Under the pieces are notes generated by a model. It saw only the letters and a program-made list of their open reading frames with translations. It had not been told where the DNA came from and made no database searches. This document shows positions 54,823-64,000 of a stretch of 64,000 nucleotides of DNA, one piece after another; position 1 is the stretch's first letter; every line of letters begins with the position of its first letter. The position numbers and the translations under genes were made by a program. The stretch covers positions 1,850,946 to 1,914,945 of the forward strand of contig CAJFCJ010000006.1 in NCBI GenBank assembly GCA_904063045.1, given 5' to 3'. The stretch comes from Dimorphilus gyrociliatus (Eukaryota > Animalia > Annelida).

Positions 54823-57800
54823 ATGGAAGAGAGTTCTATGGAGCAACCGGAAACCATTCGTTTTAGGAGGACAAACGCTTGGAGTGATAATTCGATCAGC
54901 GCTTGCGCCCATATGTTCGGTTGGTGGTTAAAACTATATTATTTTCTTGAAGAGGTTGTAGCCAGGTTTTATAAATATCAATAATCGAAATTGTGAATGT
55001 GTTTTAGAACATTCCAACATAAAAAAAAAATTGTATAAGATAGATGAGCGCATGTGTATTATTATGATTTTTTTTTTGTTGGTCTATAATTATAATCTAC
55101 TAAACATTAGTAGCGAAAAGGTGAATGTATTCATCTAAAAACATTGATTGAACTCACTTTCATTCAGGTATTGCTGGATTATTAACTACCATTATTGCTC
55201 TAATTAGTGATAAGTGGTTATATGTTTCGGAACCTGTAAATATTAAATACAAAGATAGTATTACGAATGCAACTCTTGAACAAGAAGTCTCTGTAAAAGT
55301 ATATTCCGGTTTATGGCGTTTATGTCTAGAACCAATCCCAGGCGGTTAGTATAATATAAATATATATATATTATAGAGTATATAAAACTAGAAATATAGA
55401 TATTGATATTTATAGTTATATAATTGAATATATTGTTCCACTAATAGAAAAAGAGATATCTCATATACAAATAATTTGTATTACGTAATCTAAAATAGAG
55501 AAATTCTTAGCATAAGTAAAATATCATACCAACTTATTAATAAAATACTCAAATAAACAAGAATTAATCTTGTTTAATTGCACTTTTAACCTTTTCGTTT
55601 AACCGCTAGGAATGCTTTTATTTTTATTTGTTTTGTTTGTACTTTTGCCTTGTGAAAATAAAGCAAGTCTTATAGTTTATATGTAAATTTTGGTTTATGA
55701 ATATGTAAATAAGTCATATATATATATATATATATATGTTATATAATAGACAGCATTTGAAATATTTACTTAAATCATTGTGTCTGTATTAGTCTATCAC
55801 TAGTCCGTTTTATTTGTAAAGTTGGTTGCTCGTATTTTACTGACAGAGGTCAATTGCACTACTATTGATTATAGTGGATCATGGACGGAACGCTTGGAAA
55901 ATGCGCTTACAACTGAACTGATATTAAGTAAGTAAAAATATACTTTATAATATTCAAAACCTCTATTCATAGAGTATTGTTTAGTTGTTACAATAAATAC
56001 TTTTCTTTCCTCTGTAATTTTTCATCTTTATCATTTCGTATAAAATAAAGAAAATCTACTTATTTCATTTATGTCACTATTTGAGTACAATAATAACATA
56101 TTTAGATATAGAAAAGAAGTGAAAGTAATATAAATTAGGGAAGAAATATTATGTTTAAAATGTTAATTGTTTAATACCCAAGGCAAAATCGACAGGCGAG
56201 AATAGGTTAAGGTTAGTAGGAAGCGTAAATTCATGTGTATTGTTAGTAAATTAGAAAAAGAATTACCAGCAGCCATAGGATAAGAGGAAGAGTAGGAGGA
56301 CGGCGAATGAGGGAAGAGAGAATTAAGATATATATAGCTACTGAAATAATACAATTAATTGGAAAATAATATGTCTTTTTTGAGTTACAGATAAAAAAGT
56401 AATTATAGGGTGGAGCTTATGAACTTTATAAAGTTTTCATTCACGTGACTTCTCACCATTAATTTCATCATACAAACAATTGTTTGCCTTCATCGATCAT
56501 CTTTTGTATGCTTCGCTTAAACATATACATATTAACCTTATTTGAATAATTCGTTTATTTTTTTTAAATATATATCTTAATCATCTTAAATATAAAACTT
56601 ATATATGAGAATACACAGATTACTTCAAAGTATATTTAAATGTAAACTGGTCCAAGTTACATTTTTCCTTATTTTTTTATACATAATTGATAATCGTTTA
56701 TTATTTAATTAAAGATATTAGTAAAAAGCTTACTTATTTTGTAATTAAATATTATTATTTTTACGCACCAATTCGTTTGGAAAAATAGACCGATAAGAGA
56801 AATATTTTGAAAACAAACCCTCGGAAAAGCTTTTCAAAAAAAACTTGTAAAAACTTATCGATTTCACATTCTAGTTTATTATTTATATAACGTTTGTTTG
56901 CAAAGGAATATTGTATAAACTTTATTCAAGTTGAAAAATTTACTAATTATTCTAATATCTATGATAAAGGAATAAAGAGAGGATTGATTTATATTATCAT
57001 CATACTAATACCTGTAATCGTACATCTTCGTATATTTTTTCTTTTCTCAGTAGTTTATCCCTTAAATGTTCGTTGATTACGTATTTTGCTATTATCTCTT
57101 ATGACTCATTAACGCTTTTTTATCAAAAGTTTTTCTTTAATAAAAAGTGAATTAAGCTTTCATTTTCTTTTTCCTTTCATTCACTTAATATTTTTTAAAT
57201 CTTCTTAAAATAAATCATATCACGTGATACATGCTACAAACATTAAGATGAAATAAGTCCATATACCTTATTCGATATAATAAGGCATATATCTATTATT
57301 TTTTGATTTTCTACTTTTTTAAGCCATAATCCCTTCCTGCCGCCCCCCACCCCTCTCTCTCTCTCTCTCTCTGTTTCTTTAAAGCACTGATCAGATTTTA
57401 TGCTATCCTGTACTTCCAATCAACTATATATGTTTGCCGTACTTCACATATAATAGGCCTATCTATTATTAATCAATGCTTTGTGCTAGGCCGTTTTAAA
57501 ACAGTATACATTATATTCCATTTAGAGAAATTCTCTTTCCTATTTTTCGTTAGCTTTAGCAATAGTCATGTATTTTTATTGTATTTTATTACAATTATAT
57601 ACTAAAATATAAGTTGCTTTTTTTTTAATGTCTTTATTTTGTTTAAATAGCTATTTTCCATCTGTATATAGTTTTTTTTAATGCCAATAGGAGGAATAAG
57701 AAAATCTTCAATTGCCTTCGCTTTAAGTACAATTTTGCAGTTTGCCGCGGCAATTGTTGCCGGCATGGGAAATCTTCGAAAGAATAGTCTATGCTTAATA

Positions 57801-58148
57801 GGAGCCATCATGTTTATAATTTCTGCTTTAATTCTATCTGCAGCAGTTATATTGTATGTCTGCGCTGTAAATGATGAAGTAACTCATCGAAAAAAGCCAA
57901 TTTTTATGGGCGAATCAGTATTTTCGCACCGATACGGTAGAGGTTTTTTCCTAATTGCAGCTTCAATAATCTGTTCTCAAGCGGCTGCCGCAACGAATAT
58001 CTACTTATCGGAAAGATGGTATCAGCATGATTATAGGAGGTTTTTTAAGGCTATACCGGGTTTGCGGAGGAAATTACCCATCAAATTATCTCGAAGCCTC
58101 AGTTACCGTCTAAGGGAATCAAGACTTTCTATACTGGTTACTTCTTAA
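54823..58148 (+). CDS. TARP/stargazin (CACNG)-like four-TM protein, claudin superfamily
   Basis: Four exons (54823-54919, about 55169-55345, about 55849-55927, about 57691-58148), phase-1 introns. TM1 AHMFGIAGLLTTIIALISDKWLY, ECL1 VYSGLWRLC...C, then RGIRKSSIAFALS, GAIMFIISALILSAAVILYVCAVNDEV and FSHRYGRGFFL. These match CACNG-family patterns (TDYWLY, HSGLWR.C, I++YIS...E, Y.YG.SF). Confidence 0.85.
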
Positions 58149-58984: not shown

Positions 58985-61900
58985 ATGGAGGATAATTGGA
59001 GGCCACTACCAGTAGTACTTTTTAATTATATTTTTAACTTGTATACTAATAAATCAATTTGTTTTTAATAAATAAAAAGAATAATAAGCTATTCCTTTTC
59101 TAACAAAGGAAAAAGTATACTTTTATCATTTATTATTTCTTTTTGTGATAAAAAAAATAGGCCAAAAGGCCGTGGTCTGATGAGGATAAGGACAGTAAAG
59201 GTATAAAAGACGGTGCAACTAAATACGAATCTTGGAAGAGGTAACACTTTTCTTCCCTTTTCGCTAATGATGATTACATACTTTAAGTATTAAATGAATT
59301 TTCAGCTTATTACTCAATTATACAAGTTCAACCACTTTGCACGGAGTTCGCTATATTACGATCGATACTTTATTTAAAATTAGAAGGTCTCCAATTCTTT
59401 TCTAATTAGTTTAATTAAGCAATTAAATAATAAGACTATTCAATATTTATTTAATATAAATAATATAGTATTTTTAATTATTTTTAAGTATGACTTAATT
59501 TCTGTTAATGCATATAATATTTATTAATAATAATAAAAACACAGAATCCTTTGGGCATTGTTAGTAGCTTCGGCCTTTGGAGTATTCGTTTACTATACAT
59601 ATAGTAAAATCGATTACTTTTTACAATATCCGAAAAATATAGACGTCGAAGTAACTTATCTACCAAGGGTCAAGTTTCCTGCCGTAACGATTTGCAATCA
59701 GAATCAATTGAAGTACCATTTTTAATTGGCCTCGTTTATCAACTCTTATTCTTCATTAATTTAGATTAACGGAACTCGCCGAAAAGAAATACTACAATCT
59801 CGTTCCACTTTTATTTCCAGTTGAAAAGAATTCAGGTATAGAAAAATCTTTTTCTTAATTGAATAAATTTAAAAGAATGAGGAAGAGAGAGAAAAGGTGA
59901 GAGAGAATGACGGAGGAAACGGGTAAAGAGATATTTTTTATTAATTTAAATCAAAAGAGATATTTACGTACATAGCTTTATTAGTTGATACTATTACGTT
60001 GACTCGTCTTATCCTAATACATACGATATAAAGGTAATATACTGTTAGATCCCATACAAACTGGTATTAACACACTTTAATAACGCATTAACTATATCCT
60101 TTTAAAAACAAATTAGGAACGATAAGGCTTCCGTTTAGTCATCCGGTTTAGACTCTTCCGTCATAATTTTTTATAAATTTTTTTAATGTCAGCATCGATT
60201 AATAAATCAAAGAGAATTTTTGCAACTTCCGCTAACTTTCTTTCTTTCCGATTTCTCTGTTTTGTTATATGAATGTAGACATATTTATGACATTTTTGTT
60301 CTTTTGTTTCAAGTATTCAACCCTCTATTTATCCAACAGCTAGGAGCCAATGCCGAATAGATCAGTGGATGTGTCTTGGTCAAGATAAATGCATCGATAA
60401 AAATTCAATATGTGACGCTTTTCCTGATTGTTTGAACGCAACCGACGAGACAAACTGCAGTAAAACATAATACAACTTAAAAATCATTTTTTATATAAAA
60501 AATCAATTTTTGTCCTTTTCTATTCACTTTCGCAATAGCAATCTGCCCAGCTTTGCTCCTACAAAATCAATTCAACGTCACTACTAATTTGACGTCGTTA
60601 CTGTTTAAACGACAATCGAATACTTTTAACCAAAGCCGACTGGTCTATATGACCGATCGGAATGAAATACTTTACATATTCAAAATAAAGAATAAGTGGC
60701 TAATTTCTGATATCTACATGCAGGAAACAAATTACGTAGCAATTTTAGATCAAGATAGCGAACTACCATACGGCGAAAACTTGGTTTGGAAAACGGAAAA
60801 TGGTTCGAAAATTGGTTCCATGATGTGCTTTTGTTAGTAATAAATAGGCCTATAAAATCTAATATTTTTTCCCGCCTTCAAGAAAACTATATATATATAT
60901 ATAAGTAAATAAATAAATATACGTATATAAATATGAGTTTATGTTACAGACAATCCTGATAAGACGAAAAAACATAGTAGTATAGGGAATATTACTGGCG
61001 TGTCGCTTAATGATTTGTACGACACATCGTCCCATAAGAAAAGAGATTTTGTTGAAAAATGCATTTGGAAAGGGAAAGACTGTAATAACGAAGATATTTT
61101 TGAACAATACACGGATATGGGAGTTTGTTTTACGTTCAATTCAAAAAATGATATGTTTATTGAACAGTCTGGTCCTGGTTACGGACTAACTTTGGCGCTG
61201 AATATTGAACAATACGAATATACTAAAAATTCCGAGACTGGAGTTGGTGTTAAATTGTTAGTTCATGACGTAGACGACAGGCCTCTTGTAAAGGAGAAGG
61301 GCATATCGGTATCTCCTGGATTATATTCTTTCATCTCAGTGGAAACGACTCAAGTTTGTTATCTTTTCTCTAAGTTAATTTAGCTCTTTATCCCTACGGA
61401 TTAGGTAGAAAATTTGAAGCCACCGTGGGGAAATTGCGGAGACAAGGATTTAAAATATTTCAGCGGTTATAGTTCAGCCAAGTGTAAATTACAATGCGAA
61501 ACCGATTTCCTACAAGATAGATGCAACTGTAGAGATGTATCAATGCCAAATCGAGATGGTAAATAGCATAAATCAATAAATTATTATACGTAATAAAAAC
61601 AGTCATAAAAGTACATTGAATAAAAATTGTCGAATAAGATTAAAGGATTATCGTTAAAATATGAGTAATTTTAAATTATAGCTATATATTTTTTATATTT
61701 TGAACGAATATTATATCAACTAAAGTAAAGAGGACGTTGTTCTTTAACTTGAAAAAAAAGGAGAAAATACTTTATACATACAAACATATTATCCAAGCAG
61801 CTCATTAAACGCATTATTTTCTTACAGGTTTTCCTCAAGTATGCAAGATCGATCAATATATCAAATGTGCAAAGCCATTCTTAGGTTGGTAGATCTATAT

Positions 61901-64000
61901 ACGACTGATGATAATTTTATCTTTTCATTGTATATTTAAGTAACTTTGTCCCTTTTTATTCTTCTCTTTTTTTTTCTTTTGCTCTTATTCATAAATTATT
62001 TTATTCATAAATCTGTTAAAAGATTGATTATATTCTAAAAACAAACTCTAAACCTACCAGTATATCATAGTGTAAGAATATATAGATTGTTACTACGACT
62101 ACATGTGTATGAGGTTGGGCAATCCGTACTGACAGGTAGATGAGTGAATCTCTTTTGTAATGTTTACATAAACCCCAGAATGTCTATATTCATTCTATCA
62201 TTACTGTACCTTACGGATTCCCATAGTTATGTAAATAACTCATTAATTAATAGAAAATAGAAATGCTCTTTATGGTCCTATATTTTAGATTTTTCTTATT
62301 ACAATTATTCATTCAACGAACAGATGAGATGAGAGCGGCGGGAAATTATTGTTCCTGTGAAAAACCATGTACTTCGCCAGAACACGTTCCAACAACTTCT
62401 TTTTCCGTTCTTCTAAACAAGGCTGTCGATTTAGAAACGAATAATGAACCTAGAAGTATTAACCTTCACAAAAAACTATCAAAAGCAAGAGAGATATCAT
62501 ATAGGTCTTTCAATAAATTAAATATCTTTATTAGACCTTTCTACCTAACCCTTGTTCCCTTCTCGTAACATAGCAAGATGTATATACCCTTTTCCATGTC
62601 TGTTTACATTTGTACTTAAACAGTATTACGGACAATTGTAGCTAACTATCTATCATTTGAGAACAGATTATTCGACGATAAATACGAAAGAACCCTAAAA
62701 AAGTTCCATCGCCTGAAAAATTCGATTTCATCGACATTTAGATTCTTAACTGTGACCTATACAACCCTAGAACAAGTAAATTCTGACCTATCAACTACAC
62801 TTGAGGCTATTAAAAAAGATGGCATGTGGTTGAGAGATTTAATCATTGCTGGCGAGAATGTTTTAGAGGAGGGCGCCTTAAAGATTATCGACGATTTAGA
62901 AGATATTATCTCTTCCGCCTTAAATGAGCCATTTATAGAATTTAGAAAATTAATGAAAGAAACATTAGATCATTATAGTATTATTTACAATCGGTTCTGG
63001 GATCTTACTTGTTTCATAAACGGTACTTGTAAATCAATTGATTGGAGAGGAAATGTTACTTGTCCCACATTAGATTTTGGAAATGTCAGCTGCAATTGTC
63101 AAAATGATTACTATTGCTCCAGGAGAGAGAATGCCGCTTGGGTTAGAATTTCGTCCTTAATAGACTCGTCTAATAAATTATTTTATGAAAGAATCTTGGA
63201 ATTTAATGACAAATTCCAAAAATTACCGAATATTGATCGTCTATCCTGCATACAAATTAACTTGAACCTGTTAAAAGATACACTGGGTAGCGGTAGCGTA
63301 AACAATTGCAATAAGAATATAATGAAGAATTTAAAAGCCTATGTTAAAACTAAATTTAATTTAATTAGACCAAGGTTTAATAGTATCGAACATACTTTAA
63401 GGCATATGTTGATTCGATATGTTAAAGATATGAGAGTTTTGGATGACATCGTTCAAGATAAAAGACAATATTTTTCATTGGAAAAGTCAATTTCTAATAA
63501 TTTAAAATCAATTTTTGATCATTTAAACGATATTAGACAAGAAATATTAAGTAAAAGTTCTTTTATAAAAGCGGTCAGATATCATCTCTGGTTTACTCAA
63601 CTCAATGTCAATTTGAATCCACTTTATAAATCAATCAAAGAGCTTTTTGACAACACCCTAATAAGAATAGACAGCTGTAAGGTTGAAAAATTCAACCTAT
63701 TGAATCTAATTAGGAACGTTGAGAGGAATTACGTGAACGGAAGTACAAAATTAAAAGAGGTAAAGAATTTATTGCATTTTCAAAGACATCTTCAGCTGTT
63801 GACAATTTTTCAACAAATATTCGATTCTTTAATAATTAATACAAATCAAAGGATAAAAAACTTGGAAACCATGATTAATGAATTCTATTTTACATTTATG
63901 ACCGTTATTCCTATTGAAGATTTAAAGATTGCATCTGAATATTTTAAGCAAAAAAACCTTTTGCTACCGAAATATATTATAAAAGAATCCCCTCAGATGG
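58985..64000 (+). CDS. DEG/ENaC (ASIC-like) amiloride-sensitive channel subunit with an LDLa insert and a very large knuckle insert; truncated at the right edge
   Basis: Spliced exons give the HG motif (STTLHGVRYI), TM1 (ILWALLVASAFGVFVYY), KFPAVTICNQN, CIWKGKDC..YTDMGVCFTFNS, GPGYGLTLALNIEQYEY, GVKLLVHD, thumb cysteines (PPWGNC...YSSAKCKLQCETDFLQDRCNC...C...C...CSCEKPC). TM2 and the GAS filter are not reached in the window. The first exon (58985-59011) is tentative. Confidence 0.93.
60340..60459 (+). other. LDL-receptor class A domain exon (120 nt, phase 1-1) inside the DEG/ENaC gene
   Basis: ARSQCRIDQWMCLGQDKCIDKNSICDAFPDCLNATDETNC has six Cys with LDLa spacing and the CD...DC....DE acidic motif. 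It is flanked by cag| and |gtaaaa. The ORF track misses it. Confidence 0.9.

Follow-up and report, generated by a model that had tools for sequence, protein, structure and literature searches.

A DEG/ENaC channel gene of Dimorphilus gyrociliatus with a predicted extracellular helical domain at the knuckle

The channel gene and its insert exon

The DNA analyzed here, referred to as the window, is a stretch of 64,000 nucleotides from the annelid Dimorphilus gyrociliatus (assembly GCA_904063045.1, contig CAJFCJ010000006.1, positions 1,850,946 to 1,914,945 of the forward strand), with a guanine-cytosine (GC) content of 31% in a eukaryotic source assembly of 77.9 Mb. A gene of the DEG/ENaC channel family spans window positions 59.3 to 64.0 kb on the plus strand and runs past the window end. 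At the position of the channel knuckle, this gene carries an exon of 500 codons that is the subject of this analysis. Positions beyond the window are given on L002 (G000:C6:1912000-1921999), where the window position equals the L002 position plus 61054. Each query used for searches, fold prediction and trees consisted of one exon or one open frame.

The core of the channel could be followed exon by exon. The TTLHG motif preceding the first transmembrane segment (TM1) was read in a frame at 59298-59402 (+), followed by the TM1 exon frame at 59537-59722 (+), which matched Pfam ASC positions 28-80 with an expectation value (E) of 1.6e-10 and reached a hydropathy of 1.73 in its hydrophobic 19-mer. 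Pfam identified an LDLa module between the TM1 exon and the finger/β-ball exon frame at 60937-61356 (+; ASC 144-263, E 4.9e-23). This finger exon, which was also used for the paralog tree, identified ASIC1 chains as the closest solved relatives of the core (E 8e-16). The palm and thumb base are encoded by an exon frame at 61405-61560 (+) with the motifs PPWGNCG...CNCRD (ASC 273-322, E 3.9e-10). The thumb/knuckle exon at 62324-62504 (+) encodes CSCEKPC, the strand HVPTTSFSVL and the knuckle helix KLSKAREISY, and ends in phase 2 at the donor TAT AG/GT (62504/62505, the slash marking the exon border). On its own, the thumb exon gave no Pfam ASC match, though the CxCxxPC motif is present, and its 60 aa gave no match to the PDB by phmmer.

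An earlier note on this stretch, made from its letters without database searches, had read the frame to the window end, seen no second transmembrane segment (TM2) and named a lack of TM2 downstream as a possible refutation of a channel. With the contig extended, the missing elements were found just past the window end, both starting within 350 bases downstream of the insert exon. The β11-β12 exon lies at L002 3168-3259 (+), starting at window position 64222, and reads ENFLQLELFYKELTERKVSQKRAYESMTLL, with a weak Pfam ASC match (403-431, E 0.2). The TM2 exon at L002 3318-3466 (+) reads (S)DLGGLMGLLLGASVLTLFEVIDLF... to the stop codon and matches ASC 430-454 with an E of 1.9e-6. The TM2 sequence itself is GDLGGLMGLLLGAS, with a 19-mer hydropathy of 1.98, and its GAS filter motif (G-x-S) reads GLLLGASVLTLFE. 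The core motifs of the window gene are thus intact, comprising TTLHG, CxCxxPC, the GAS filter and an open frame to the stop. Judged by its sequence, with Pfam PF00858 matches, two membrane segments and the HG and GxS signatures, the window gene is an ASIC-like DEG/ENaC channel subunit.

Between the thumb/knuckle and β11-β12 exons lies the insert exon, a single exon of 1503 nt (1 + 500 codons + 2) at 62667-64169 (+; ending at L002 3115) in phase 2 at both ends. The intron preceding it, 162 nt long at 62505-62666 (+), contains a CTAAC branch point at 62642-62646 and a CAG acceptor at 62664-62666, and holds no conserved ATG or exon; the donor, branch point, acceptor, exon start and stop-free frame described in the earlier note are all located where it had placed them. 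The exon opens with AG+A, encoding Arg, and continues in full codons from 62668 in the frame LFDDKYERTLKK.... The window holds the first 1334 of its bases, corresponding to 444 stop-free codons, and the remaining 169 lie past the window end. The frame stays open to 64188 and the exon ends at the donor TTC AA/GTTAAT (64169/64170), as no other in-phase GT occurs close to where the frame closes. A 523-codon open frame is expected by chance with P ~4e-19 at the local base composition. The following intron is 52 nt long. The giant knuckle insertion of at least 444 aa suggested earlier is therefore real. Its 500 codons share one reading unit with the channel, as three independent lines described below indicate (the sister species, a distant homolog and the paralogs), and they lengthen the protein by ~495 residues, placed after the knuckle helix KLSKAREISY-R and before the pre-β11 segment ..TATFF-N-ENFLQLELFY.

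Within the insert, the six-cysteine stretch that the earlier note had pointed out is present at 63010-63117 (+; insert residues 115-150), with the spacing C-x5-C-x10-C-x9-C-x-C-x5-C and three NxS/T sites inside it. A YVNGS motif lies further downstream at 63730-63744 (+; insert residues 355-359; column 376 of alignment A1), and its NGS sequon (63736-63744) is the only N-glycosylation sequon common to all three orthologs in that alignment. The highest 19-mer hydropathy in the insert is 0.84, compared with 1.98 for TM2, and there is no segment resembling a transmembrane helix. A genome search for a second copy of the insert found none.

Several other open frames lie in and around the channel gene. 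A 112-aa open frame without a Pfam match is located at 60499-60834 (+), after the LDLa module and before the finger exon. A 155-aa open reading frame (ORF) at 57681-58148 (+), immediately 5' of the channel gene, contains two hydrophobic segments and resembles the end of a small multi-pass membrane protein. The next gene downstream, at L002 4219-5696 (+), shows F-box-like ORFs (..WENIPSEILAYIFLKLDQKSRVQCSLVCKNW..) followed by leucine-rich-looking exons and is separate from the channel gene.

Homologs and the insert-bearing subfamily

A word-index protein search with the insert returned one relative, P0001, an ORF of a sister species with 74% identity. Such searches reach proteins of 0.55-1.75 times the query length, with full-length annotated channels of at least about 1000 aa outside their reach. 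P0001 is located on L005, a genomic contig of 2.8 kb obtained in a sequencing run of a different animal with very AT-rich DNA. The exon order of L005 is identical to that of the window gene. In the DNA alignment of the two, conservation begins at AG/ATTATTC and ends at TTCAA/GT. The introns are unalignable, with 55% identical positions for the 162-nt intron in a forced global alignment, and the split codons are kept at both ends (AG/A for Arg; AA/C versus AA/T for Asn).

Over the 500 codons, the comparison with L005 gave a nonsynonymous rate (dN) of 0.141, a synonymous rate (dS) of 0.79 and a ratio (omega) of 0.18 (bootstrap 95% 0.13-0.24). By this pattern of substitution, the insert is under purifying selection. 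The thumb exon showed 97% amino acid identity with a dN of 0.015, and the flanking core exons, likewise at 97% identity, a dN of ~0.014. At the protein level, the insert evolves ~10 times faster than the flanking core exons, yet is clearly constrained. All nine cysteines and all four sequons of the insert are kept in L005, including the six cysteines and three sequons of 63010-63117. Because of the purifying selection, the lack of a membrane segment and the conserved sequons and cysteines, the insert is, on sequence grounds, an extracellular domain atop the channel. The exon is predicted to encode an N-glycosylated all-alpha domain, with the glycosylation read from the sequons.

A more distant homolog was identified by a full phmmer scan of 1.84 billion representatives, in which the insert had two matches only, P0001 and P0002 (E 5.3e-4). 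P0002 lies on L006 (ENA ERZ23491132, scaffold_36095), a 49%-GC eukaryotic scaffold inside a metagenome assembly. This appears as an animal scaffold with GT microsatellites and poly-Asp and poly-Leu runs. The upstream exons of L006 encode the same channel type, with PPWGTCG...CQCRD and DELRAAGNYCDCPTPC..YVPTTSFS..AREITYR. There, the thumb continues into the insert (AREITYR-VVKHK...) within one exon, without an intron, and the insert ends at FY AG/GTGAGT, the same phase-2 intron as in the window gene. Aligned pairwise end to end, the two inserts show ~20-24% identity (E 2e-10) and have in common the motifs WLRDL, RETL, RxYVNG(S/T), YxxFMT, MxPxDxAxxFW and GN(D/E)L. The six-cysteine segment is absent from the L006 insert. 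A word-index search with the L006 insert returned only L006 itself, and one with alignment A2, a query dominated by the low-complexity CVCV N terminus of P0002, returned only P0002. Searches of JGI metagenome contigs with A1 and with L006 identified nothing.

The earlier note had treated the insertion as a single case. Genome searches with the thumb exon and with PF00858, followed by inspection of 22 loci, instead identified it as a trait of an expanded subfamily. In ~25 genes, the window gene included, the ASC match halts near profile position 391 and resumes near 398, 1.3-1.6 kb further on. The inserts at this point measure ~460-500 aa across the ~25 paralogs, with 457-491 aa in the large group I described below and 471-475 aa in two genes, L025 (C3) and L026 (C19). 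In most of the inspected loci, the finger, thumb, knuckle and a helical stretch of ~460-490 aa form one exon of ~770 aa that is followed by a small TM2 exon. In L025 and L026, one open exon, 776 and 754 aa long, respectively, encodes the core, insert, β11-β12, TM2 and C terminus. The L025 exon aligns to ASIC2 (6l6p) at residues 214-377 and then 398-456, placing ~505 residues where ASIC2 has ~20. Other paralogs in the genome are canonical, with a contiguous ASC match over positions 1-455. Apparent giant inserts of 1505 aa (L012, G000:C116) and 3790 aa (L027, G000:C146) were rejected as runs of N read as X.

Four insert-bearing genes are arranged head to tail in tandem (L016-L018, G000:C20:20200-39200), a sign of local duplication in the subfamily. 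In several members, the stretch from TM1 to the ASC core was also observed to contain MAM, Kringle and LDLa modules. Examples of such mosaic channels, which exceed 1500 aa, are L052 (G000:C26:151000-159000), L024 (G000:C12:788500-796400) and L053 (G000:C11:1034000-1042000). L024 also carries a 12-fold PGGGGGPAQTTAA mucin-like repeat.

A tree of the kind that the earlier note had proposed was computed from one exon with 126 columns and 22 rows, leaving out rows of less than 90 aa coverage. All 18 insert-bearing rows, two of which were recognized as such on locus inspection, were placed apart from the four sampled canonical paralogs. Three of the canonical paralogs lie behind a branch with 95/97 support, and the remaining one (L035), whose branch is very long, falls at the midpoint root. 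Resolution within the insert-bearing group is poor.

By sequence, the inserts form at least three groups, namely the window gene with L006, the L025/L026 type and the large group I. Between the groups, neither phmmer (best E 0.0045 with a set of 25 sequences) nor hhalign detected similarity. Within group I, the mean identity is 51% in the core versus 23% in the insert, and the insert is the more diverged part in 78/78 pairs; the inserts diverge at twice the rate of the core. The inserts share an end motif (..AFIR, ..DFFR, and ..ATFF in the window gene) that corresponds to the core element KYIS in the ASIC2 alignment of L025, and for this reason it is no evidence of kinship among the inserts. 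Given the tree together with the size, helicity and identical position of the inserts, we infer one origin followed by fast divergence as the simplest reading for all inserts. Alternatively, the inserts may have arisen by repeated capture at a hot spot.

Predicted fold and readings of the insert

Known domain families offered no assignment. Pfam gave no significant family for the insert and its homologs, and a profile search of the PDB with the insert gave nothing significant. The weak matches in the latter search were coiled-coil stalks with E values of 0.004 or worse, among them the trimeric and tetrameric stalks of coronavirus HR1 and the DC-SIGNR neck (E 0.004-0.1). The heptad score of the insert was 0.418 compared with 0.28 +/- 0.021 for shuffled sequences, ~6 standard deviations above by a crude score of our own that is not a dedicated coiled-coil predictor. 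An AlphaFold model of the window insert from three sequences is almost all helix, with long helices of up to 60 residues at 2-61, 70-118, 266-315, 361-413 and 450-490, and places the Cys-rich stretch in low-confidence coil. The helicity and heptad score agree with the mostly heptad-like helical sequence described earlier. Since the predicted local distance difference test (pLDDT) of this model was 41, it was not used for fold searches.

A more confident model was obtained for the insert of a paralog, the C46 gene. AlphaFold2 with 13 group I inserts gave a pLDDT of 85.8 and a predicted template-modeling score of 0.76 for an all-alpha, single-chain bundle. Its long helices occupy residues 6-68, 259-310, 325-373 and 449-479, and residues ~63-262 make up a smaller helical sub-domain. 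We read this model as a putative long stalk in which a central hairpin is paired with the N- and C-terminal helices and which bears a helical head at its distal end. The long helices of the window insert follow the same order (N-terminal, central pair, C-terminal) as those of the C46 model, and with moderate confidence the window insert probably shares the stalk-and-head architecture. Foldseek with the C46 model gave nothing meaningful (best E 0.02, TM score ~0.1), and VIA-align matched model residues ~4-475 to long four-helix bundles with Z of 9-10.8. A search of the ESM Atlas with L006 gave no usable match. The dynein heavy chain tail (DHC_N1, PF08385) was considered for the group I insert, with an Atlas score of 0.95, and was rejected, as its recognition value of 1431 is below the useful level and there is no Pfam DHC_N1 match. 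Of the helical tower with a disulfide knob envisaged in the earlier note, the tower is supported by the confidently predicted, elongated helical bundle of the paralog insert, which spans both ends. The putative knob comprises six cysteines that are kept in two close species, absent from L006 and modeled as low-confidence coil.

At the level of the gene, we conclude with a probability of about 0.75 that the insert is a translated extracellular domain of a DEG/ENaC channel; a sensor mechanism, taken alone, is far less certain. A number of points weigh against this conclusion. Inclusion of the exon in messenger RNA is deduced from genomic DNA, and we do not claim constitutive use in the window gene. 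With phase-2 borders on both sides, the exon could be skipped without a frameshift. The L006 contig stops before its TM2. The pLDDT of the window-insert model is low, as given above, and the fold matches of the C46 model are generic, with a Z of ~10 lying within the stated background of the tool for unrelated helical bundles. A comparison of A1 with group I and group II by hhalign gave a probability below 1%, with only the last 12 residues aligned, which are part of the core, and the paralog fold is carried over to the window insert from position, size, helicity and the tree only. Function, whether as sensor, tether or scaffold, we infer.

One alternative is that the insert is an alternatively spliced cassette, so that the gene would produce a channel of canonical length alongside a long form with the insert as a switchable module. 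Joining position 62504 to the β11 exon keeps the frame (AG+C, Ser) and gives KLSKAREISY-S-ENFLQLELFY, near the layout of ASICs, and the 3' donor of the insert exon, CAA/GTTAAT, is weak for this species. However, the exon end ..ATFF aligns with the ASIC2 core element KYIS via the paralog, and skipping would remove this core element. Moreover, L006 has no intron 5' of the insert and L025 and L026 have none on either side, making the insert constitutive in these genes, and the strong purifying selection shows that the long form is in use. We therefore consider a switchable cassette unlikely.

A second alternative accepts the insert as real and assigns it a structural or assembly role, either as a crown for trimerization or heteromer sorting or as a spacer that would hold the MAM, LDLa and Kringle modules off the membrane. 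The heptad periodicity, the weak matches to trimeric and tetrameric stalks, an insert length that is tightly kept while the sequence drifts, and the adhesive modules in the same proteins are all consistent with such a role. Against it, canonical DEG/ENaC trimers assemble without such a domain, as established by ASIC and ENaC structures, and AlphaFold2 models the monomer as a self-contained bundle and not as an open single coil. The stalk matches from the PDB profile search are also not significant. As the main purpose of the insert, this role also appears improbable to us.

It is very improbable that the gene is a decaying or non-conducting DEG/ENaC relative in which the insert has no gating role. 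The channel is known here from gene sequence, and the family is large and partly made up of tandem copies, as might be expected of such a relative, but all core motifs are intact and both the core dN of ~0.014 and the insert omega of 0.18 relative to the sister species speak against decay. A separate nested gene or transposon-derived ORF inside a channel intron, akin to the separate transcript considered in the earlier note, can be excluded for practical purposes on sequence grounds: no stop codon interrupts the frame over the 48 nt ahead of the acceptor and no known domain links the insert to channels, but a conserved ATG is lacking (residue 53, the first Met, is replaced by Ile in the sister species), the conservation borders coincide exactly with acceptor and donor and the split codons are kept, the flanking introns of 162 and 52 nt hold no conserved element, no other copy of the insert exists in the genome, and homologs and paralogs (L006, L025 and L026) carry the insert fused in frame with the channel core.

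Returning to the insert as an extracellular domain of the channel, we can outline how it might act. In ASIC structures, the knuckle tops the ectodomain and continues directly into β11-β12 and TM2. Each insert would form an elongated antiparallel helical bundle in which the first and last long helices pair, and three such bundles would crown the trimer. A 50-residue helix is ~75 angstroms long, and three bundles of ~75 angstroms would build a crown equal in height to the canonical ectodomain. In this mechanism, the insert would serve as a specificity-determining sensor module that binds a ligand or a matrix or tether partner and signals to the gate via the palm strands. The proposal of a sensor is made because the knuckle joins directly to β11-β12 and TM2 and because the insert is the part that diverges fastest among paralogs. 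Purifying selection in the ortholog pair, fast divergence among paralogs and conserved length together give the profile expected of a specificity module. Among the possible functions, ligand or chemical recognition seems to us the leading candidate, though short of an even chance, followed by a mechanical tether and then, a little behind, by assembly or structural support.

The full proposal is a new class of DEG/ENaC receptors in which three inserts per channel would form a crown of ~75 angstroms that recognizes a stimulus and gates the pore via β11-β12 and TM2. The ~25 paralogs, often bearing MAM, Kringle or LDLa modules, would then be lineage-expanded chemo- or mechanoreceptors with a sensor fold unseen in solved structures. 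We put this proposal forward tentatively and regard it as possible rather than probable.

Comparison with known channels and bundles

DEG/ENaC channels respond to protons, peptides, bile acids, proteases or force by opening, and the choice of stimulus is mostly ascribed to the finger, thumb and acidic pocket. In the present subfamily, the knuckle, the element wired most directly to the gate, carries a grafted domain that equals the entire canonical ectodomain in size. If the sensor role is true, the subfamily offers ~25 natural variants with which to ask how input at the knuckle opens the pore, and it could bear on the tethers or ligands used by invertebrate 'orphan' DEG/ENaCs. A literature search found no description of a knuckle insert or of MAM- or Kringle-bearing DEG/ENaCs. 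The genome paper terms the ENaC repertoire canonical (PMC7854359), a description that hides a large mosaic subfamily.

The closest structural matches of the paralog insert model are the designed maquette 6z0c, the single-chain ROP 1yo7 and bundles of the ClyA/Hbl/AhlB type (6grj, 7nmq), with Z of 9-10.8 over 105-231 residues. Their identity is 6-11% and their Z lies within the tool background, so that the resemblance is geometric only.

Nematode degenerins of the MEC-4/MEC-10 type also carry lineage-specific extracellular additions and are discussed as tethered mechanosensors. Their additions precede the thumb and consist of Cys-rich rather than helical sequence, and we know of no degenerin addition at the knuckle.

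ENaC resembles the window gene in having a peripheral extracellular part with an added regulatory module, whereas its core similarity to the window gene (E 1e-8) is weaker than that of ASIC. This module, the gating release of inhibition by proteolysis (GRIP) domain, is described as a protease-regulated finger insertion (PMC6197857). It is much smaller than the window insert, and the ENaC knuckle itself has no added domain. N-glycans of the ENaC knuckle and palm are reported to connect the channel with the matrix, allowing it to sense shear (PMC6955349). Such glycan tethers are a precedent for the knuckle as a site of force input.

ASIC1 and ASIC2 (2qts, 6ave, 6l6p) provide the closest solved core, with the thumb CxCxxPC, β11-β12 and the GAS filter of TM2 aligned via the paralog exon. 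Unlike ASICs, the window gene has an LDLa module in the finger region. At the knuckle, where ASICs have ~20 residues forming two short helices (ASIC2 378-397), the window protein has ~495.

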